A DNA stretch of 64,000 nt, from NCBI GenBank assembly GCA_025786725.1, contig JAHLTZ010000008.1:62001-126000 (forward strand), read 5' to 3'. Made by a program: the position numbers and the translations under genes. Below are positions 8,156-24,030 of this stretch, piece after piece; the stretch's first letter is position 1, and each line of letters begins with the position of its first letter. This stretch comes from Syncephalis fuscata S228 (Eukaryota; Fungi; Zoopagomycota). The notes beneath the pieces are model-generated. The model worked only from the letters and a program-made list of their open reading frames with translations. It had not been told where the DNA came from and searched no databases.

Positions 8156-8584
8156 TATTGTTATAAGCATTAATTGATGGGAATACGCGTGGTGCCACAA
8201 TTTACGCCTATTATGCCTTGCCAGTAGCATGTGTTGTGCGTGATCCGTCGTAACAATTAAGCGAATATAAATAGTATAAAAGAACCATGGGATACATCCC
8301 TTTTTGTTAGTGTTAGCATGTGGTAGTTATAATAAAACCATTTCGGTCACAAACTGCCTTAATGAGTACCAATTTAGCAGGCAAATGATAATCACATTTC
8401 TTTAGCCATTAATCATCTATCAATCTGCATTTAATAACCAAGTGCTTACGCCAGTATTTAAGTCGCGCTTTTCGCTAGCTGTTTGCCAATATTCAGTAGC
8501 TTTTTTCTTGTTATTTTGTTTTAGTTTAACGCTCACACTTTTAACGTCCATACCTCCAACATCCATTCTAACCTTAAGCTTATT

Positions 8585-9167
8585 ATGCATTTCAGTCTAT
8601 TACCCACAATCATTATTCTCGGTTGTCTATTTGCAACAATTATTATTAATGTTAACTCAGTAGCTTCGTTGCCGACACAGAGCGGTCGAAGGGAACGTTC
8701 CGACGAGCTGCGAAAGGCTGCCATCATAAATGGCTCATCCCCCTCGACATCAAACCCAGCAATTGATGATCTAAACGTATCATGCCATCCGACAAATATT
8801 TCAAAAAAGACGGATTTTACGTATATCCTGAAGAGTGGTTTGGCTACAGTAATAAATGGGCTATTGCTCATGGATACTACGCTGCTTCGGCTAGTGTTTA
8901 TGGCCAACCTGGCTATGCCGAAGAAGTTGCTGTCTATATTACCTGTACGAATAGTCTGAAACTATACAATCTACTGGCAACAGGTCGTAAGGTGTGCAAA
9001 ATTACTGCTTTGTTTGTATTTGTTTACTAACTGTTGACATTTAGCTTATGCAGATGCGCTGGCAAAAATACCCCATTGAGATACCAGGCACTGGTAGACG
9101 TGGAATTGCAACACTTCAATCGTTTCAGCCTGATCCTCAATATGCGTGTAATGTTTTTCTATATTAA
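8585..9167 (+). CDS. Small secreted protein family member 1, copy A (1-nt deletion near 8775 relative to copy B)
   Basis: Signal peptide MHFSLLPTIIILGCLFATIIINVNSVAS; one phase-0 intron; ctaaacgt in A versus ctaaagcgt in B. Confidence 0.7.
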
Positions 9168-10403
9168 AACATAATAATAGTAATATTAATAAAAGTTTTA
9201 TGATAATAACATTTTAAGCTTATCTGTATTTATGGTTTATCAGCCATAACCTGTGACAAACACTAAACCAGCAATGATTCAATATCCATCACAGACTAAT
9301 ATGGCAAATTGCAATCTAGCATTAATATCAAATATTAATTTTATGGTTTGCTCTGCGGTAGCTTGCATTACATCTTCAACAATTTTTGGTGTGTGCATCT
9401 GCAATAAATAGCAAGTTAAATTGAGTTAAAATGTGTTATATTCAAATTAAATACTGCAAGATTTCTATGGCATTTAACAACTAAATGTTCCATGGCATTG
9501 ATAGTGGCAAAGATTGGCAAGTTGTTACATTATATGTTGGTTTATGATCGATATAATGTAAAATATAGACACTACACTGCTCATGAAAATCACAACATAT
9601 GGCGAAAGTATTTCATTTTATGATAACAAAAACAGCGAGCACAGTGTAAGAAGAAAAGTACTTGTTGTGTTCTAACCTACAGTCAAGTATTCAATACATG
9701 TAGAAAAATACAACATATCTAAGAAATGAAAATGTAAATAAATTCAGTGGCAAAATAATGTATTGCAATGATAATTAAATTTAAAACTACTAACTTAATT
9801 GGCAGCAAATGTAATGCATCATTTATGAAGCTGTACTGTTTTATAAATACTGGTAATCACCATGATTGATACATTGTAACAAGGGGGTTGTAACTACTCC
9901 GCTTGTTACATATTGCAATATGAGCTATTCAGTTCATTATAGTTGAATCATGATAATTAATGGCCAATAGGAAACAAAATTAGTATCAAAGCATTGTCAA
10001 CCAACATATTGTGTTTTAACCGCTAGATAAGTACAAGTAAATATCAGAAATTAGCATTATAAGATAACGCTAAGATAAGGTGCTGCTTGGCTAGCTGAGT
10101 TACAATTTGTTAAATAGAGCTGTAAAAATATAAATATTAGTGTGATTGCTTTTATAAAACATTATGCCAATCGGCATTATTGTAACGCAACTATGTAATT
10201 GAATTTCCTTGTTGCCATAAAAAGTAAATTGATACACGTGAAACAGCTAAAGAAAAATTATATCGTTTTGCTTATGGTATCGGAGTTTTATAATCTTGAT
10301 GCCTTTGAATTGCTTTTTAAAATAAATAGATAGATTTTTCGGACTATTTTAGTTTTCAATATTAACCATCCATTACACTAGTAGATTTTACAAACAAACA
10401 GAC

Positions 10404-11028
10404 ATGCATTTTACTAGAACAGCTTTTGTATCAGCTTGCTATGGACTGGCGATCTACGCCAGCCTTATAGCTACTAGTTCGGCTTCTCCAGCTTCTCCAC
10501 TTGAGAAATATATAATGAAAAAACAATTAGCCGAAAAACAATTAGCCGAAACACAATTCGCACCAATAGACAGCCCAGAATCATCGACAATCAAAGTATC
10601 ACTTTTCGATGCCATCAGTGCAGCTTTACCACTTGGATTTAAGTTCTATTGGGACAAGTACAAACTGAGCTTCCCAAAAGAATGGAAAAAAGACGCTAGT
10701 GGTGGCTGGGCATACACCTATGCAGTACTATCCTCCAAAGGTTCAAGGTTATATTACACCGGACAGAAAAGCGCCTATGTGATTTGCACCGATAACACTG
10801 AGCTATTTTCAGACTTTAGCAAACAGCTCAATGTAAGTAAGCGCTGTGTAAATAGTATTATGTGCTGACTTTTACTAGGATGCATCAGAAAAGAAAGCAT
10901 TGCGGACGTTGACTATTCCAGGATTAGCCGGTTTCATAACAGAGCAGCAGCCTTCCTTTAAGCCGACTAAACAAATCAGCTGTTTGCCGGTGTATTATCA
11001 ACATGCTTTGTCTAAGAATAAGCTGTAA
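10404..11028 (+). CDS. Small secreted protein family member 2, copy A (~192 aa, intron 10833-10878)
   Basis: Signal peptide MHFTRTAFVSACYGLAIYASLIATSSA; exon 2 DASEKKALRTLTIPGLAGFITEQQPSFKPTKQISCLPVYYQHALSKNKL*. Confidence 0.75.
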
Positions 11029-11276
11029 CGCCGACAGGTTAATGGCAGCATACACATGCTTTGTTTCACTATTACCTTTGCCATAATAGTGTGTCGCTTG
11101 AAATAGAAATATACATGCAAAGCTGTAACTCTGATTCATGTACATTTTTGGCTACTCCAAAAGAGATACTTTGAAGCAACGTTACACGATCACAATAAAT
11201 TTCTTATTTAAATCAAGCCAAATTTGCATTAGATACCAATAAAAAACTCAGTAGACGATTCCTATCCACAACTGAA

Positions 11277-12010
11277 ATGCGCTATACATTTACGATTCTT
11301 GCTATTGTCAGTTGCCTCGTTGCTTTTTCTAACGACGGATTATTGTCACCTGTCAGTGCTGAGCCAATTCCCGAAAGCAGAAGAAACCAACTAACTACGG
11401 CACAAGTACATGCTAATACTTTAAAATTCCTACAATCTAAAAATGAGCATCCTATTGAGCCGGAAAAGTTTTTGAGCGCAATAGAAAGTGCTATACCATA
11501 TAAGTTGCTTTATGAAGGCCAAGGATTTAAGTTGAAATTCACCACGCCTTGGACAATTAATCAATCAAAAAACTTTGTGCGAGAATCTGCTTATTACAAA
11601 AACGCAAGTCCATCGCTGTTTCGTGTAGAAAAGAAAATAGAAATTTATGTTTAATGTCCTAGGCTTTTCCAGGATTATCAGGTAATAGTAAATAAACTAA
11701 AGGTAAGACGGTAGTTTTGATCGTTATGGACTGATTAAACTGACTGTATTTTTTGCAGAAACTAAAGGAACCAGAAGATCCAAAGAAATTGAAAAATCCA
11801 AGGCAAAAAATAGCTCCACTAAAAATCCCAGGTACAGATGAAATTATGGTAGATAAATTGGCAACTTTTATGCCTATTAAGCAAGCTACTTGTATGGTGT
11901 TCACATTTAAAAAACCAAATTCTCCAGAAAGCAATTTGCCATCAAACACTGATCCATCCTCAAGCGATAAGAGTAAAAGCAAAAAACTCTGGCCATTGAA
12001 AAGACTATAG
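11277..12010 (+). pseudogene. Small secreted protein family member 3, copy A; in-frame TAA at 11652-11654, frame stays open across intron 11703-11758
   Basis: Signal peptide MRYTFTILAIVSCLVAFS; IYV*CPRLFQDYQVIVNKLK|KLKEPEDP...KIPGTDEIMVDKLATFMPIKQATCMVFTF. Confidence 0.65.
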
Positions 12011-12303
12011 TCCTCTTAAAACTAACAATCTTTTAGAAATAAACAAATATATTTAAATGCATCATACAGTTGCTTTAATTATCATTACCATATTCGGTAA
12101 TTATAATTTATTTATATTAACATTATAATTCATCGTGCTTAAAGTCATTTGTATTACCATTTACTAAATAATTATAACCACAACATATATATTAATTAAT
12201 TTATTAATTTTGTATTAGTCCTTACAAGAAAGCCAGCAACTTATTGCAATAACAATTCGATTAAAGCATAACTGTTTTTTGCTAGAAAAGTGTTTATAAC
12301 ACA

Positions 12304-14502
12304 CTAAAAGTTGGGACAATCTCCTTCATTGCCCCACCATTCCAATTTAACTTCCTTGTACTGGAAGGCAAAGAAAATAATAACACCAGCAAGCGCAATA
12401 CCAGAATCCATACCAGCCGATAGAACATAGTTGAATCGGCTCCACCAGGCGTTACGGTAGCGATAGACGACAAACTGGAAGACGAAGGCTAAAAGGAACC
12501 AGCTGGTGTACATACCAGGTTGAGTAGGTGGCATGATGGCAGTACCACTGATGAACACCGGGATGTGAATGTATTTAAACCATGAGTTGGGATACCGACG
12601 GGACAGAAGCCAGAATGGCACTGGAAGCAAAAAGCCAATAAGGAAGCACCAGTTAAGAGCAGAGTAAAAGCCAGACGAACCAAACATACGGTCTGGACCA
12701 ATGACACCCCAAATGACCGAGGCAGAGTAGACGATACGGGCATTAGAACAGTTCCATACTGGCTCATCTGGCTGACAAATATTAGGAATTAGATTGAACA
12801 TGAGATAAGCAGTGCCAAGATTGACAAGACCGGCGATGATTGTGCCGACACTTTGGGCAATAAACATGTGGCGTGGCGGAATCTTCATGTAATGGCCGAG
12901 CTTCAAATCGCCAAGGAAGATAATACCTTGACACATGGAAATGTTGCCGTATGTCTTGAAAGTAACATTAGCAATGGCACGACCAGGTAGAATAAAACCG
13001 ATAATCAGCTCCGTAATAATGTTAAGACCAGGTGTTTGATTGGTAACGGCTGTAATGATACCAACAGGAATGATAAAAATGGCGGCGAGGGCAACGGCAA
13101 GAATGAGACCCCACCATGGCAGATCGATACCGAATACTTCGCACACGACAATGGCCACTGCAGTATTGGCAACAAACATAAGGCCATACCACCAGTCTGG
13201 CACTTCGTCGTAGCGGTCCATCAACTTGGCGTGAATATCGTCACTTTCGGAACGAGAGTCGCGGAAACGGGCCATGATTTCCTTGCCATGATACAGGATT
13301 GTGTGTGAAATAACGGCGGCTAGACTAGCAAAACTAACACCATATGTTACAGCAAACATAAAGGACATTTGTGGTGGGCCAACCTCGGCGTATTTTGCTT
13401 CATTAAGCTGCAATTTTTTGTCTAGAAGCGAGGTGGTTGGATAATCTTTGAATGTAGAAGTAAACAGAGCGGTACTAAAAATGGGCATGCTTTGAGCATT
13501 CCAAATATTATTGAAAAATCCATAGGAAATTAAAATCCAGGCGAATACAATGAAGCCAGCAAATATGTTGGCAGCAACCCAGAATGGTACAGCCAATGGA
13601 GACAAAAGGAAAGATGAAATGTAGTTCCAGTCAAATGATATCGCGAGTAGACCAAGACCACGAGTGCCCGAACCAAGCTGGTTGGCCAGTTTGTTATGTG
13701 GAGCAAAGTAGCACAAAAGGGAGATTGTGCCAAGGAAGGTAGCCAAGTAACCGGGAAGGAAATAGTATAGAAAACTGCCCAAAGCAGCAAACCCGAAGAA
13801 ACGAAGACGCGTCATTTGGCCAGGCGCAACGTCGTCAACATCGTGCAAAGTACGGAAAAGTGTGACGTTAACAAGCTGGGCAGGCCATATCATAGCACTT
13901 GGACGAATCAGGAAACGACGGGCCATACCAGCCAAACCGTAACCGAGACATTGTGTTGTGACGACAAGCAAGAACGATGGAAAGAAGCCAAGATCTTGTC
14001 CGTAGTAGATGCGCTTAATCGTGACGATATCAATGGCATAGGCAGTACCGGCAGCGGCATTGGCACATCCAGTAATCAATACGTGCTCCTTAACGTTGAA
14101 GGGGCCCGGATTAAGGTTGAATGAAAAGCGACCTGAGCCAACAATGCGATTAGGCAAAGTGCGAGCCATAAAGACACCGAGTGGATAAGAGAGCAGCTGA
14201 GCCACCAGGACTGACACCGTAAGTGGAGTTTCACGGAACAAGAAGAACTGGTTGATGAACGACAGTACAACGGTGAAAAAGGTACCTAGGACCCAAAAGC
14301 GGAATGTCATACTAGGCAAAGTCGGGTCATCTTTGTTACTGACAGTGGCCCGAACAATATCAAATGGTGAGTCTTCCTCCTCGAGGTCCTTTGATGGCAC
14401 GGCAAAATCTTTCTCCAAATCGTCCTGCTGAGACTTTTCCGCAGGATGCAACTCACGCATCGCCGGCGTGTGGCTATACTCGTTACTGTTGGGTGGGCTC
14501 AT
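12304..14502 (-). CDS. OPT-family oligopeptide transporter, copy A (intact, intronless, 732 aa)
   Basis: OPT motifs SPFDIVRATVSNKDDP, NPGPFNVKEH, DLKLGHYMKIPPR; many transmembrane segments. Confidence 0.95.
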   Translation of the reverse strand: MSPPNSNEYSHTPAMRELHPAEKSQQDDLEKDFAVPSKDLEEEDSPFDIVRATVSNKDDPTLPSMTFRFWVLGTFFTVVLSFINQFFLFRETPLTVSVLVAQLLSYPLGVFMARTLPNRIVGSGRFSFNLNPGPFNVKEHVLITGCANAAAGTAYAIDIVTIKRIYYGQDLGFFPSFLLVVTTQCLGYGLAGMARRFLIRPSAMIWPAQLVNVTLFRTLHDVDDVAPGQMTRLRFFGFAALGSFLYYFLPGYLATFLGTISLLCYFAPHNKLANQLGSGTRGLGLLAISFDWNYISSFLLSPLAVPFWVAANIFAGFIVFAWILISYGFFNNIWNAQSMPIFSTALFTSTFKDYPTTSLLDKKLQLNEAKYAEVGPPQMSFMFAVTYGVSFASLAAVISHTILYHGKEIMARFRDSRSESDDIHAKLMDRYDEVPDWWYGLMFVANTAVAIVVCEVFGIDLPWWGLILAVALAAIFIIPVGIITAVTNQTPGLNIITELIIGFILPGRAIANVTFKTYGNISMCQGIIFLGDLKLGHYMKIPPRHMFIAQSVGTIIAGLVNLGTAYLMFNLIPNICQPDEPVWNCSNARIVYSASVIWGVIGPDRMFGSSGFYSALNWCFLIGFLLPVPFWLLSRRYPNSWFKYIHIPVFISGTAIMPPTQPGMYTSWFLLAFVFQFVVYRYRNAWWSRFNYVLSAGMDSGIALAGVIIFFAFQYKEVKLEWWGNEGDCPNF

Positions 14503-16389: not shown

Positions 16390-17864
16390 GAGAAATTAAA
16401 AAATACGCCGCTATTAAATTTTAGGGGAATTTTGAAAATACATTGTTTTAAAATTTCATTATAATAAGGTCCTCTTTTCAAATTTTATTTATTGAAATAT
16501 ATTGTTTTAAAAAATCTACCAAATGTCTACCAAGCTATTTTAAAATGCCATATTTAACAATATTGAAATACTGAAGGCCTCTGTTGACAAGTTTAATCTT
16601 GTTAGCAATTGAAATTTTAAGAGGAAAAACAGTGATTCAACAAGATTACAGCTCATTTGTCTTCATGAAGACCGTTCCAGCAACAAATATTGGTTTATTT
16701 CGGCTGCTAGAAAGCAGAAAACCAGCCTATTAAAGACTGCTCAATGCAATCTTGAACGTTTTGACGACTATCCATACAATTCTGGTAATAATAATATTAT
16801 ATTTATTACTAAATATACTGCAAATAATGTTGCTACACTTTCAAATGTAAAATCAACATATATACAAGTAAAAACATCAAGATAAGCGCATGTGTAATTA
16901 GTTAATATACACTAACAATTGCAATGATCAACAGATGCTATTGTTTGTTATTAGTATTAAATGACTTTGACTTATAGCAGTAGTTTAAATAAACAGATTT
17001 ATAACAAAAGTTGTAATTGTATTGTTACGCTTCTTGTTTTAAAAATCGCAACTTGGATGACCAAGCAACACATTATCCTGTCGCTATCCTATAACGTTAA
17101 TTTCTGATGCTTATTAACGCTTACCTTAACGCTCAGAATACAATGTGTTGTTTGGTTGTATTGCTTTTATAATAAGATTATTCCTTATTGGTCGTTAATT
17201 ACCACAGTTTAACTATAATAAACTGAATAACTTGTATGACACTAAGTAGAAATAATATTGGACTAGAAACTTGATTATTCCTTTATTGATATTGAACAAA
17301 GCTATCATTATATAGTAAACACAACTAATAATAGAACCTGAATGCCTTGTGGTATTTCATCATTAGCGCAGCATATTAGTTCAGGTGGCTGCTCATATGC
17401 TCACAACTAACAAGTAGCTACTCGTCATATTGTTGTAATAGGCATTTGTTACTAGTAATCAGTACTAATATTTGATAGTTATATTATTTTTGTGATCAAT
17501 CACACGATATATCACTTAGTCACACTTTTACAAGACCCTGTCCGGAATATCAGAACAGTAATAATATATATTTTGATAATAAGCTAAAATGAATTGAATT
17601 ATAAAATCAATCTTTATTGAAAAACAAATACAAACTACTAATGGAACGGCTATCAAGAAAAGAAAACGTGTTATTAAAGAATGGTTAATTTGTAGTAAAC
17701 GCCATTACAAGAAAACGAAGTGTGGGGTAAATAAAAAACAATATATTTAATAAATAAAATTTGAAAAGAAGGACTTAGTATAATGAAATTTAAAAACGGT
17801 GTATTTATTTTATAAAAAACAGGAAAATAAATAAATTTAAAAAGTGTATTTTCCAAATTTTTCC
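16390..17864 (+). mobile_element. Decayed Mutator-like element (MULE) with long imperfect TIRs and a MuDR N-terminal domain remnant
   Basis: About 16390/16424-16508 is an imperfect inverted repeat of about 17733-17864 (aaatacattgttttaaaatttcattataataaggtcctcttttcaaattttatttatt versus reverse complement aaatacaccgtttttaaatttcattatactaagtccttcttttcaaattttatttatt), with G...C termini. 16544-16790 translates NAIFNNIEILKASVDKFNLVSN*NFKRKNSDSTRLQLICLHE...WFISAARKQKTSLLK, resembling the MuDR DBD_Tnp_Mut domain. Confidence 0.7.
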
Positions 17865-18121
17865 TATAATAAAGCCATTTCGGTCACAAACTGCCTTAAT
17901 AAGTGCTAATTTAGCAGGCAAATGATAATCACATCTCTTTAGCCATTAATCACCTATCAATCTGCATTTAATAACCAAGTGCTTACGCCAGTATTTAAGT
18001 CGCGCTTTTCGCTAGCTGTTTGCCAATATTCAGTGGCTTTTTTCTTGTTATTTTGTTTTAGTTTAACGCTCACACTTTTAACGTCCATACCTCCAACATC
18101 CATTCTAACCTTAAGCTTATT

Positions 18122-18705
18122 ATGCATTTCAGTCTATTACCCACAATCATTATTCTCGGTTGTCTATTTGCAACAATTATTATTAATGTTAACTCAGTAG
18201 CTTCGTTGCCGACACAGAGCGGTCGAAGGGAACGTTCCGACGAGTTGCGAAAGGCTGCCATCATAAATGGCTCATCCCCCTCGACATCAAACCCAGCAAT
18301 TGATGATCTAAAGCGTATCATGCCATCCGACAAATATTTCAAAAAAGACGGATTTTACGTATATCCTGAAGAGTGGTTTGGCTACAGTAATAAATGGGCT
18401 ATTGCCCATGGATACTACGCTGCTTCGGCTAGTGTTTATGGCCAACCTGGCTATGCCGAAGAAGTTGCTGTCTATATTACCTGTACGAATAGTCTAAAAC
18501 TATACAATCTACTGGCGACAGGTCGTAAGGTGTGCAAAATTACTGCTTTGTTTGTATTGTTTACTAACTGTTGACATTTTAGCTTATGCAGATGCACTGG
18601 CAAAAATACCCCATTGAGATACCAGGCACTGGTAGACGTGGAATTGCAACACTTCAATCGTTTCAGCCTGATCCTCAATACGCGTGTAATGTTTTTCTAT
18701 ATTAA
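18122..18705 (+). CDS. Small secreted protein family member 1, copy B (intact, ~173 aa, intron 18530-18591)
   Basis: Signal peptide; exon 2 MHWQKYPIEIPGTGRRGIATLQSFQPDPQYACNVFLY*. Confidence 0.75.
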
Positions 18706-19934
18706 AACATGATAATGAGTAATATTAATAAAAGTTTTATGATAATAACACTTTAAGCTTATCTGTATTTATGGTTTATCAGCCATAACCTGTGACAAAC
18801 ACTAAACCAGCAATGATTCAATATCCATCACAGACTAATATGGCAAATTGAAATCTAGCATTAATACCAAATATTAATTTTATGGTTTGCTCTGCGGTAG
18901 CTTGCATTACATCTTCAACAATCTTTGGTGTGTGCATCTGCAATAAATAGCAAGTTAAATTGAGTTAAAATGTGTTATATTCAAATTAAATACTGCAAGA
19001 TTTCTATGGCATTTAACAACTAAATGTTCCATGGCATTGATAGTGGCAAAGATTGGCAAGTTGTTACACCATATGTTGGTTTATGATCGATATAATGTAA
19101 AATATAGACACTACACTGCTCATGAAAACCACAACATATGGCGAAAGTATTTCATTTTATGATAACAAAAACAGCGAGCACAGTGTAAGAAGAAAAGTAC
19201 TTGTTGTGTTCTAACCTACAGTCAAGTATTCAATACATGTAGAAAAATACAACATATCTAAGAAATGAAAATGTAAATAAATTCAGTGGCAAAATAATGT
19301 ATTGCAATGATAATTAAATTTAAAACTACTAACTTAATTGGCAGCAAATGTAATGCATCATTTATGAAGCTGTACTGTTTTATAAATACTGGTAATCACC
19401 ATGATTGATACATTGTAACAAGGGGGTGTAACTACTCGCTTGTTACATATTGCAATATGAGCTATTCAGTTCATTATAGTTGAATCATGATAATTAATGG
19501 CCAATAGGAAACAAAATTAGTATCAAAGCATTGTCAACCAACATATTGTGTTTTAACCGCTAGATAAGTACAAGTAAATATCAGAAATTAGCATTATAAG
19601 ATAACGCTAAGATAAGGTGCTGCTTGGCTAGCTGAGTTACAATTTGTTAAATAAGCTGTAAAAATATAAATATTAGTGATTGCTTTTATAAAACATTATG
19701 CCAATCGGCATTATTGTAAACAATATGTAATTGAATTTCCTTGTTGCCATAAAAAGTAATTGATACACGTGAAACAGCTAAAGAAAAATTATATCGTTTT
19801 GCTTATGGTATCGGAGTTTTATAATCTTGATGCCTTTGAATTGCTTTTTAAAATAAATAGATAGATTTTTCGGACTATTTTAGTTTTCAATATTAACCAT
19901 CCATTACACTAGTAGATTTTACAAACAAACAGAC

Positions 19935-20558
19935 ATGCATTTACTAGAACAGCTTTTGTATCAGCTTGCTATGGACTGGCGATCTACGCCAGCCTTATAG
20001 CTACTAGTTCGGCTTCTCCAGCTTCTCCACTTGAGAAATATATAATGAAAAAACAATTAGCCGAAAAACAATTAGCCGAAACACAATTCGCACCAATAGA
20101 CAGCCCAGAATCATCGACAATCAAAGTATCACTTTTCGATGCCATCAGTGCAGCTTTACCACTTGGATTTAAGTTCTATTGGGACAAGTACAAACTGAGC
20201 TTCCCAAAAGAATGGAAAAAAGACGCTAGTGGTGGCTGGGCATACACCTATGCAGTACTATCCTCCAAAGGTTCAAGGTTATATTACACCGGACAGAAAA
20301 GCGCCTATGTGATTTGCACCGATAACACTGAGCTATTTTCAGACTTTAGCAAACAGCTCAATGTAAGTAAGCGCTGTGTAAATAGTATTATGTGCTGACT
20401 TTTACTAGGATGCATCAGAAAAGAAAGCATTGCGGACGTTGACTATTCCAGGATTAGCCGGTTTCATAACAGAGCAGCAGCCTTCCTTTAAGCCGACTAA
20501 ACAAATCAGCTGTTTGCCGGTGTATTATCAACATGCTTTGTCTAAGAATAAGCTGTAA
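19935..20558 (+). CDS. Small secreted protein family member 2, copy B (1-nt deletion in the T run just after ATG)
   Basis: atgcatttact in B versus atgcattttact in A; otherwise apparently identical. Confidence 0.65.
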
Positions 20559-20806
20559 CGCCGACAGGTTAATGGCAGCATACACATGCTTTGTTTCACT
20601 ATTACCTTTGCCATAATAGTGTGTCGCTTGAAATAGAAATATACATGCAAAGCTGTAACTCTGATTCATGTACATTTTTGGCTACTCCAAAAGAGATACT
20701 TTGAAGCAACGTTACACGATCACAATAAATTTCTTATTTAAATCAAGCCAAATTTGCATTAGATACCAATAAAAAACTCAGTAGACGATTCCTATCCACA
20801 ACTGAA

Positions 20807-21540
20807 ATGCGCTATACATTTACGATTCTTGCTATTGTCAGTTGCCTCGTTGCTTTTTCTAACGACGGATTATTGTCACCTGTCAGTGCTGAGCCAATTC
20901 CCGAAAGCAGAAGAAACCAACTAACTACGGCACAAGTACATGCTAATACTTTAAAATTCCTACAATCTAAAAATGAGCATCCTATTGAGCCGGAAAAGTT
21001 TTTGAGCGCAATAGAAAGTGCTATACCATATAAGTTGCTTTATGAAGGCCAAGGATTTAAGTTGAAATTCACCACGCCTTGGACAATTAATCAATCAAAA
21101 AACTTTGTGCGAGAATCTGCTTATTACAAAAACGCAAGTCCATCGCTGTTTCGTGTAGAAAAGAAAATAGAAATTTATGTTTAATGTCCTAGGCTTTTCC
21201 AGGATTATCAGGTAATAGTAAATAAACTAAAGGTAAGACGGTAGTTTTGATCGTTATGGACTGATTAAACTGACTGTATTTTTTGCAGAAACTAAAGGAA
21301 CCAGAAGATCCAAAGAAATTGAAAAATCCAAGGCAAAAAATAGCTCCACTAAAAATCCCAGGTACAGATGAAATTATGGTAGATAAATTGGCAACTTTTA
21401 TGCCTATTAAGCAAGCTACTTGTATGGTGTTCACATTTAAAAAACCAAATTCTCCAGAAAGCAATTTGCCATCAAACACTGATCCATCCTCAAGCGATAA
21501 GAGTAAAAGCAAAAAACTCTGGCCATTGAAAAGACTATAG
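20807..21540 (+). pseudogene. Small secreted protein family member 3, copy B, with the same in-frame TAA (21182-21184)
   Basis: Apparently identical to 11277-12010. Confidence 0.65.
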
Positions 21541-21833
21541 TCCTCTTAAAACTAACAATCTTTTAGAAATAAACAAATATATTTAAATGCATCATACAGT
21601 TGCTTTAATTATCATTACCATATTCGGTAATTATAATTTATTTATATTAACATTATAATTCATCGTGCTTAAAGTCATTTGTATTACCATTTACTAAACA
21701 ATTATAACCACAACATATATATTAATTAATTTATTAATTTTGTATTAGTCCTTACAAGAAAGCCAGCAACTTATTGCAATAACAATTCGATTAAAGCATA
21801 ACTGTTTTTTGCTAGAAAAGTGTTTATAACACA

Positions 21834-24030
21834 CTAAAAGTTGGGACAATCTCCTTCATTGCCCCACCATTCCAATTTAACTTCCTTGTACTGGAAGGCA
21901 AAGAAGATAATAACACCAGCAAGCGCAATACCAGAATCCATACCAGCCGATAGAACATAGTTGAATCGGCTCCACCAGGCGTTACGGTAGCGATAGACGA
22001 CAAACTGAAAACGAAGGCTAAAAGGAACCAGCTGGTGTACATACCAGGTTGAGCAGGTGGCATGATGGCAGTACCGCCTATGAACACCGGGATGTGAATG
22101 TACTTGAACCATGAGTTGGGATACCGACGGGACAGAAGCCAGAATGGCACTGGAAGCAAAAAGCCAATAAGGAAGCACCAGTTAAGAGCAGAGTAAAAGC
22201 CAGACGAACCAAACATACGGTCTGGACCAATGACACCCCAAATGACCGAGGCAGAGTAGAAGACACGGGCATTAGAACAGTTCCATACTGGCTCATCTGG
22301 CTGACAAATATTAGGAATTAGATTGAACATGAGATAAGCAGTGCCAAGATTGACAAGACCGGCGATGATTGTGCCGACACTTTGGGCAATAAACATGTGG
22401 CGTGGCGGAATCTTCATGTAATGGCCGAGCTTCAAATCGCCAAGGAATACAATACCTTGGTACATAGAAATGTAACCGTATGTCTTGAAAGTAACATTAG
22501 CAATGGCACGACCAGGTAGAATAAAACCGATAATCAGCTCCGTAATAATGTTAAGACCAGGTGTTTGATTGGTAACGGCTGTAATGATACCAACAGGAAT
22601 GATAAAAATGGCGGCGAGGGCAACGGCAAGAATGAGACCCCACCATGGCAGATCGATACCGAATACTTCGCACACGACAATGGCCACTGCAGTATTGGCA
22701 ACAAACATAAGGCCATACCACCAGTCTGGCACTTCGTCGTAGCGGTCCATCAACTTGGCGTGAATATCGTCACTTTCGGAACGAGAGTCGCGGAAACGGG
22801 CCATGATTTCCTTGCCATGATACAGGATTGTGTGTGAAATAACGGCGGCTAGACTGGCAAAACCAATACCATACGTTACAGCAAACAAAAAGGACATTTG
22901 TGGTGGACCGACCTCGGCATATTTTGCTTCGTCAAGCTGCAAGTTCTTGTCCACAAGCGAGGTGATTGGATACTTTTCAAATTTAGAAGTAAACAGAGCG
23001 GGACTGAAAACGGGCATGCTTTGAGCATTCCAAATATTATTGAAAAATCCATAGGGAATGAGACCCCAGGCGACTATAATGAAGCCAACAAATATGTTGG
23101 CAGCAGCCCAGAATGGTACAGCCAATGGAGACAAAAGGAAAGATGAAATGTAGTTCCAGTCAAATGATATCGCGAGTAGACCAAGACCACGAGTGCCCGA
23201 ACCAAGCTGGTTGGCCAGTTTGTTATGTGGAGCAAAGTAGCACAAAAGGGAGATTGTGCCAAGGAAGGTAGCCAAGTAACCGGGAAGGAAATAGTATAGA
23301 AAACTGCCCAAAGCAGCAAACCCGAAGAAACGAAGACGCGTCATTTGGCCAGGCGCAACGTCGTCAACATCGTGCAAAGTACGGAAAAGTGTGACGTTAA
23401 CAAGCTGGGCAGGCCATATCATAGCACTTGGACGAATCAGGAAACGACGGGCCATACCAGCCAAACCGTAACCGAGACATTGTGTTGTGACGACAAGCAA
23501 GAACGATGGAAAGAAGCCAAGATCTTGTCCGTAGTAGATGCGCTTAATCGTGACGATATCAATGGCATAGGCAGTACCGGCAGCGGCATTGGCACATCCA
23601 GTAATCAATACGTGCTCCTTAACGTTGAAGGGGCCCGGATTAAGGTTGAATGAAAAGCGACCTGAGCCAACAATGCGATTAGGCAAAGTGCGAGCCATAA
23701 AGACACCGAGTGGATAAGAGAGCAGCTGAGCCACCAGGACCGACACCGTAAGTGGAGTTTCACGGAACCAGAAGAACTGGTTGATGAACGACAGTACAAC
23801 GGTGAAAAAGGTACCTAGGACCCAAAAGCGGAATGTCATACTAGGCAAAGTCGGGTCATCTTTGTTACTGACAGTGGCCCGAACAATATCAAATGGTGAG
23901 TCTTCCTCCTCGAGGTCCTTTGATGGCACGGCAAATCTTTCTCCAAATCGTCCTGCTGAGACTTTTCCGCAGGATGCAACTCACGCATCGCCGGCGTGTG
24001 GCTATACTCGTTACTGTTGGGTGGGCTCAT
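21834..24030 (-). CDS. OPT-family oligopeptide transporter, copy B (1-nt frameshifts near 23935 and 22007)
   Basis: Three ORF pieces (23836-24030, 21824-23929, 21834-22178) reconstruct a full paralog of copy A. Confidence 0.9.

Follow-up and report, generated by a model that had tools for sequence, protein, structure and literature searches.

Syncephalis fuscata genes encoding candidate secreted proteins with a predicted kinase N-lobe-like fold

Syncephalis fuscata is a zoopagalean fungus that parasitises other fungi. The question raised by the locus studied here is whether three of its tandem genes, g1, g2 and g3, encode secreted proteins that resemble the N-terminal lobe (N-lobe) of a protein kinase and lack the C-terminal lobe (C-lobe), as was proposed in a sequence-only reading of the same DNA. 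The genes lie within a stretch of 64,000 nucleotides, hereafter the window, which corresponds to C350:62001-126000, part of one contig of the 29.4-Mb S. fuscata assembly. The interpretation that we favour, and hold to be slightly better than evenly balanced, is that they belong to a Syncephalis-only family of secreted N-lobe-like proteins, probably kinase-derived, which would act as non-enzymatic binding modules and are candidate effectors or decoys.

Gene structure, membership and distribution of the family

Three neighbouring genes were indeed located where the sequence-only reading had placed them, arranged head to tail on the plus strand with two exons each. The parasitic-fungus source that it had supposed was confirmed by the spliced g2 product, which is the 192-aa database protein KAI9597032.1 (P0001) of S. 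fuscata. The parts of the genes are as follows, with window coordinates, and with Cys+15 denoting a position 15 codons past the first invariant Cys.

8585-9167, plus strand: g1, whole gene span, two exons
8585-8991, plus strand: g1 exon 1 (copy A), encoding the signal-like N-terminus, a linker and the first part of the N-lobe-like core; frameshifted here
8992-9044, plus strand: g1 intron, 53 nt, GT..AG, phase 0, at Cys+15; splicing shown by the RNA contig of run X5
9045-9167, plus strand: g1 exon 2, IPG ... F.P..Q..C..FLY and then a stop; the protein ends at the predicted hinge
10404-11028, plus strand: g2, whole gene span, two exons
10404-10832, plus strand: g2 exon 1, intact, 143 codons; joined to exon 2 it encodes KAI9597032.1 exactly
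10833-10878, plus strand: g2 intron, 46 nt, GT..AG, phase 0, at Cys+15; required by the annotated product P0001
10879-11028, plus strand: g2 exon 2 with stop; sequence identical in all four copies of the gene
11277-12010, plus strand: g3, whole gene span, two exons
11277-11702, plus strand: g3 exon 1, with an in-frame TAA at 11652-11654; pseudogene
11703-11758, plus strand: g3 intron, 56 nt, GT..AG, phase 0, at Cys+15
11759-12010, plus strand: g3 exon 2, Lys/Ser-rich tail and then a stop

The products of g1, g2 and g3 are mutually ~22-25% identical and can be aligned along their whole length, and the similarity lies beyond chance. Pairwise phmmer comparisons of exon 1 gave P values of 5e-6 for g1-g2, 2e-5 for g2-g3 and 6e-12 for g2-g4 (g4 being a member on another contig), and exon 2, scored independently, gave 1.4e-6 for g1-g3 and 6e-6 for g2-g3. 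On these comparisons, the three genes are true paralogs. For g1 and g3, all searches and alignments used the separate exons, with no splicing by hand and with the broken genes left unrepaired, and full-length sequences were taken exclusively from annotated database proteins (P0001 and P0005-P0009).

The alignment revealed the shared blocks that the sequence-only reading had described in these very divergent proteins, namely (I/L/M)P..F..W, Y(I/V)xC, IPG and the ending F.P..Q..C...(F/Y), with W94, Y125, C128, P156, F170 and C178 (g2 numbering) as invariant residues. The phase-0 intron, which had been noted at a similar position, was found exactly 15 codons past the first invariant Cys in every member, i.e., in g1-g5 and in both orthologs from Syncephalis plumigaleata, and the introns of the family are 46-61 nt long. 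The shared signal peptide was likewise recovered as a signal-like hydrophobic N-terminus in each gene. All members have such an N-terminus (12-residue Kyte-Doolittle maximum of 1.7-3.0), with small residues ahead of a plausible cleavage site and no later membrane segment, as judged from hydropathy. The proteins end 0-45 residues past the strand equivalent to kinase beta5.

Further members and remnants elsewhere in the genome are listed below.

Contig C317: g4, obtained from the own-genome profile search; intact frame
C350 ~170.0-170.7 kb (L049:902-1617): g5, a pseudogene; exon 1 is frameshifted and a TGA stands 11 codons past the Cys, but the intron at Cys+15 is kept and exon 2 can be recognised (IPG...F.P..Q..C)
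C334 ~12.8-13.2 kb (L034:1166-1581), minus strand: tandem relics of two members, a YIICT...-type fragment and a g3-like N-terminus

Six matches, all from Syncephalis, came out of an exhaustive hidden Markov model (HMM) search of 1.84 billion representative proteins, comprising four S. fuscata models and the S. plumigaleata proteins KAI8056137.1 (P0009) and KAI8055294.1 (P0008). In a word-index search of proteins, g2 exon 1 matched nothing but the g2 protein. The P0009 gene lies directly behind a BolA gene, as does g1, and the two are positional orthologs with 26-34% identity, compared with 52-86% for the adjacent BolA exons. The P0008 gene and g4 share their neighbours, a multi-pass membrane-protein gene on one side and a RING-finger gene on the other, and the two products are 28% identical. 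The synteny of both pairs indicates that the family predates the split of the two species; counterparts of g2 and g3 are absent at the g1 locus of S. plumigaleata. Judged by these matches and identities, the family is restricted to Syncephalis and fast-evolving.

Two other features were observed around these genes. A weak exon-2-like match (E 0.02) at L081:12982-13089 (plus strand), ~2.3 kb downstream of the P0008 gene, may be a relic belonging to a second family member. In addition, a Pfam-unmatched family of multi-pass membrane proteins adjoins the family genes in both species (L020:3614-4354, plus strand; L081:8361-9101, minus strand; L080:11102-11914, minus strand), with its gene standing head-to-head with g4 and with the P0008 gene (41% identity across species) and tail-to-tail with the P0009 gene.

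Predicted fold and relation to protein kinases

AlphaFold2 was run with the family alignment on P0001, the g2 protein, and P0009, the most distant member, was taken as a second target. The g2 model has a mean predicted local distance difference test score (pLDDT) of 69.5 and a predicted template modelling (TM) score (pTM) of 0.60; in the core (residues ~64-186), most 10-residue blocks reach a pLDDT of 84-91. The elements of the model follow the order helix, hairpin, two long strands, helix, three strands. The P0009 model (pLDDT 58.7) has the same order of elements.

The models were compared with 48,161 PDB chain representatives in VIA, an unfiltered structure search that is independent of Foldseek. 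For g2, all of the best 50 rows were protein-kinase-like N-lobes, 11 of them with Z ≥ 8. The best row was YabT (6g4j), with a Z of 9.6 and a root-mean-square deviation of 2.5 Å over 98 residues (chain 3-110), and further rows included CLK2 (5unp, Z 9.5) and DYRK1A (2vx3, Z 9.1). PknB of M. tuberculosis (1mru) was aligned to the g2 model over residues 3-95, which we take to extend to the hinge, and in most g2 rows the matched kinase range was the N-lobe, stopping at about the hinge. The best 50 rows for P0009 were again kinase-like N-lobes without exception, with a best Z of 8.0. Foldseek with the g2 model listed almost only kinases (E 0.03-0.1), and the ESM Atlas yielded kinase and APH clusters at a TM score of ~0.4; an ESM Atlas feature search with the g2 core gave no usable match.

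The predictions support an N-lobe topology for the core, that is, a five-stranded antiparallel sheet plus an alphaC helix, and this support comes from the uniformity of the rows and the full coverage of the lobe, not from the Z values themselves. The kinase N-lobe fold with sheet and alphaC that had been claimed from the sequence is thus upheld in two predicted models, each with 50 of 50 rows. The accompanying claim, that the proteins stop at or shortly past the hinge without HRD or DFG, agrees with the models as well, with the C-lobe absent and the matched ranges ending at about the hinge.

Compared with the N-lobe of eukaryotic protein kinases (ePKs; PF00069), the family is alike in its predicted fold and in the order of its elements, which runs from a helix through strands and an alphaC-like helix to two strands that end at the hinge, with ~82-98 residues superposing at 2.4-3.6 Å and Z 7.3-9.6 (YabT, CLK2, DYRK1A, PRPF4B 4ian and PknB). 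The differences are substantial, however. The Syncephalis family has no C-lobe and no HMM or profile-profile similarity to ePKs, and alignment A5 contains no invariant Gly, Lys or Glu, i.e., no GxGxxG loop (the Gly-rich loop), no beta3 Lys and no conserved alphaC Glu, with a Cys at or next to the place of the Lys. Unlike ePKs, the Syncephalis proteins also carry the putative signal peptide and two invariant Cys.

At the sequence level, no kinase was recovered in any of the searches. At E ≤ 10, Pfam scans with all exons and with four full-length members gave chance rows only and no Pkinase, and the single row obtained with the family profile against PDB sequences was a chance match and not a kinase. 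The exhaustive search of the 1.84 billion proteins returned no kinase, and the own-genome profile searches with the exon-1 and exon-2 alignments found family members and relics only, with no kinase among them. Comparison by hhalign with the N-lobes of eight canonical kinases of this genome gave P values of 0.34-0.41 (local, relaxed and global), which are not significant. The best local pairing set IPG...F...C..Y against HPN...F...L.V.EY, the beta4-beta5 stretch, and the relaxed alignment was co-linear, both within chance. Consequently, the C-terminal endings, which had been held to mirror kinase beta4-beta5, are alone not statistically significant, and a profile link to kinases was found neither by Pfam, the PDB profile and the exhaustive search nor by hhalign. 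Since all the sequence tests were negative, the argument for kinase descent is drawn from the predicted fold.

A Pkinase scan of the genome revealed at least ~25 matches confined to model positions 9-112, many of them in open frames of ~117 codons, among them the following.

C157:27787-28131: Pkinase match confined to positions 9-112
C134:6167-6493: Pkinase match confined to positions 9-112
C330:9924-10244: Pkinase match confined to positions 9-112
C1:999257-999559: Pkinase match confined to positions 9-112
C350:727772-728074: Pkinase match confined to positions 9-112

These matches may represent a multi-copy kinase family or N-lobe-bearing exons, and may be a source of the g1-g3 family. The 30 kinase loci examined in the genome are all ordinary cytosolic kinases. 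Tandem STE20/PAK-like kinase genes with many short introns, at C179:126369-131513 (minus strand), are likewise ordinary cytosolic kinases and not signal-peptide kinases.

The family might instead be real, secreted and lineage-specific, with a kinase likeness that is convergent or an artefact of modelling, its proteins having an unrelated small alpha/beta fold with one disulfide; we regard this as unlikely, though it deserves to be taken seriously. The negative outcome of every sequence and profile test against kinases speaks for it, as do the shallow alignment, the mixed confidence of the models and Z values only somewhat over background. These same points weigh against the interpretation that we favour, given that no sequence method links the family to kinases, that the models were built on 10-11 alignment rows, that three of the five g2 models had a pLDDT of ~42 and the P0009 model only 58.7, and that Z values of 8-9.6 are modestly above 7-8, the tool's typical best for unmatched models. 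To be counted on the same side are the many broken members described in the next section (g3 in all four copies, g5, and some g1 and g2 copies) and the lack of an RNA contig on g2 among the runs mapped, which proves nothing. Convergence or artefact is nevertheless hard to reconcile with two different targets that each returned 50 of 50 kinase N-lobes with near-complete coverage of the lobe to about the hinge, and with Foldseek and the ESM Atlas pointing the same way. Moreover, the only local hhalign pairing, not significant in itself, is the beta4-beta5 stretch in the correct order, and many N-lobe-only Pkinase matches are present in the same genome.

Fourfold duplication, lesions and transcription

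A 4-kb block containing g1, g2 and g3 is present four times on contig C350, with an identity of 97.6-99.1% that includes the intergenic DNA. The four copies, and the genes of the second copy in the window, are located as follows.

Window 8300-12300 (C350 ~70.3 kb): triplet copy A
Window 17840-21840 (C350 ~79.8 kb): triplet copy B
C350:131930-135930 (~131.9 kb): triplet copy C
C350:157600-161600 (~157.6 kb): triplet copy D
Window 18122-18705, plus strand: g1 copy B, exon 1 at 18122-18529 and exon 2 at 18583-18705; reading frame intact
Window 19935-20558, plus strand: g2 copy B, with a 1-bp deletion in codons 2-3 and the ATG out of frame
Window 20807-21540, plus strand: g3 copy B, with a TAA identical to that of copy A

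An oligopeptide-transporter-like open reading frame (ORF) follows each triplet in the window, at 12304-14502 and 21824-23929 (both on the minus strand), and the duplicated unit is therefore larger than the three genes.

Each triplet copy carries its own set of single-base lesions; the sequence-only reading had mentioned neither the fourfold block nor the lesions. At the locus itself (copy A) only g2 reads through unbroken, with g1 having a 1-bp deletion and g3 an in-frame TAA. In copy A, g1 is one base short after 8775, a base that is present in copies B, C and D, and this loss shifts the core out of the frame of the signal part; copy C of g1 has a 1-bp deletion of its own, whereas in B and D the gene is intact, with an exon 1 of 136 codons. 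The g2 gene is intact in copies A, C and D and has lost the frame of its start codon in copy B, which is annotated as KAI9597036.1, an N-terminally shortened protein of 155 aa without the signal peptide. In g3, the TAA at 11652-11654 in copies A and B occupies the "x" of Y(I/V)xC and is CAA in copies C and D, where a TAG plus a frameshift (copy C) and two frameshifts (copy D) are found instead. Hence no copy of g3 is intact, and the sequence-only reading, which had treated all three genes as functional, is not sustained for this pseudogene. Run X2 provided DNA contigs that confirm both the T at 11652 of the g3 TAA and, in copy D, the deletion at 11403.

The deposited gene models pass over two of these lesions. 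KAI9597031.1 (g1) bridges the frameshift by skipping the 59 nt at 8777-8835, which removes the conserved hairpin block, and KAI9597033.1 and KAI9597037.1 (g3) bridge the stop by skipping 24 nt (11649-11672), which loses the invariant Cys. Both annotated introns were rejected: the 59-nt g1 intron deletes the conserved hairpin and is not skipped in the RNA contig described below, and the 24-nt g3 intron removes the invariant Cys and is implausibly short against the 46-61 nt of the family. An alternative intron that would rescue g1 copy A was also discarded, there being no AG between the core-frame stops and the conserved block. For annotation, the lesson is that gene models here hide lesions with implausibly placed or implausibly short introns.

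Contigs of public sequencing runs were mapped on window positions 8500-12100. An RNA contig of run X5 (564 nt, depth 144) covers 8501-8989, skips the 53-nt GT..AG intron and resumes to 9116. The skipped stretch is exactly the g1 intron, so that both the transcription of g1 and its modelled splicing are shown; the g1 mRNA, whose frame is intact, is abundant and correctly spliced. The contig has an extra G after 8775, giving an intact g1 frame, and retains 8777-8835. It matches none of the four assembled copies exactly, combining variants of A, of B and of C/D with a unique base at 9086, and it can therefore be assigned to no single copy and neither confirms nor contradicts the copy-A deletion. 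The contig builder may have joined reads of several copies into a mosaic, or the contig may come from a slightly different genotype. A weak RNA contig (depth 2.8) was also found on g3 exon 2 (11842-12010).

The lesions raise the possibility that the genes are decaying, functionless remnants of truncated secreted kinases that persist through recent segment duplication only. The different lesions of the four g3 copies, the frameshift and TGA of g5, the C334 relics, the damage in g1-A, g1-C and g2-B and the 24-nt and 59-nt "introns" with which annotators bridged lesions would all fit such decay. We nevertheless consider it quite improbable, because g1 and g4 have intact frames, the invariant residues and the common intron in two species with conserved synteny, and because g1 mRNA is abundant and correctly spliced. 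The coding DNA also has fewer substitutions and far fewer indels than its flanks: between copies, substitutions amount to 0.3-1.7% in coding versus 1.4-3.3% in non-coding DNA, indel columns number 2-4 versus 15-30, and the ratio of nonsynonymous to synonymous substitution rates (dN/dS), which rests on very small counts, is 0.2-0.5 and hence below 1.

Possible role and significance

Under the favoured interpretation of a secreted, N-lobe-like binding module, the family proteins, of ~155-210 aa, would consist of a core of ~120 residues preceded by a signal peptide and by a linker of ~35-60 residues that is poorly ordered. Catalysis by the core can be excluded, since the Gly-rich loop, the invariant Lys and Glu and the C-lobe are all missing. 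In the models, C128 falls on the strand that precedes the helix and C178 on the final one, the equivalents of beta3 and beta5. In the kinase sheet beta3 and beta5 are neighbours, and for this reason a C128-C178 disulfide appears likely to us; it would lend stability to the isolated lobe in the extracellular space. In function, the proteins would most likely be binding modules without enzymatic activity that the mycoparasite secretes, which makes them candidate effectors or decoys, and their ancestry would probably lie in a kinase, plausibly among the signal-peptide kinases of this genome.

Searches of the literature yielded no account of a secreted N-lobe-only protein and nothing relevant on secreted kinases of Syncephalis. 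To our knowledge, the catalysis-dead kinase-fold proteins that are known as signalling scaffolds or parasite virulence factors keep both lobes. The nearest comparison is with the secreted kinases and pseudokinases of other parasites, such as the Toxoplasma rhoptry (ROP) proteins, including the ROP5 pseudokinase (3q5z), and Plasmodium FIKK kinases (PMC3682881 and PMC12137140). Like the Syncephalis family, these are signal-bearing, lineage-specific, expanded and fast-evolving kinase-fold proteins of a parasite, and ROP5B was among the structural rows for both models (Z 6.9 for g2 and 5.8 for P0009). They differ in keeping the full two lobes and in being recognisable by sequence, whereas the Syncephalis family is single-lobed and unrecognisable, and its host is another fungus.

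Another precedent is HipS of the HipBST toxin-antitoxin system, which, according to PMC9325769, is a separate small protein corresponding to the N-terminal part of a kinase. The likeness to the Syncephalis family lies in this small, separate equivalent of a kinase N-terminal part; unlike that family, HipS is bacterial and cytoplasmic, has a HipA-type kinase fold and has its partner HipT encoded adjacent to it. HipS/HipT, as a stand-alone kinase subdomain with a partner chain, also lends some weight to the view that the Syncephalis proteins enter the secretory pathway and act on the parasite itself, for example by pairing with or regulating the kinases or pseudokinases that it secretes, or as wall- or membrane-associated factors. 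The conserved multi-pass membrane-protein gene that adjoins family genes in both species would agree with this, and so would the oligopeptide transporters that adjoin them in S. fuscata. No partner was identified, however, and the divergence of the orthologs relative to BolA would be more typical of host-facing proteins, so that a self-acting role is, in our estimate, very improbable.

A more specific version of the favoured, host-facing interpretation is offered tentatively, and we consider it less likely than not. In this proposal, a stand-alone, disulfide-braced secreted N-lobe would be a new type of effector module, the end of a stepwise truncation of Syncephalis secreted kinases, and would occupy host N-lobe docking partners or pair with host kinase lobes. 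The order of truncation proposed runs from a full kinase to a pseudokinase, then to a half-kinase cut after DFG and lastly to the N-lobe only.

If the interpretation of the family as kinase-derived secreted N-lobes is true, it would mean that an N-lobe can fold and serve alone outside the cell, and the family would be a natural case of a kinase decaying to a binding module beyond sequence recognition. Its members would then be candidate players in the still almost unknown exchange, at the molecular level, between zoopagalean mycoparasites and the fungi that serve as their hosts.

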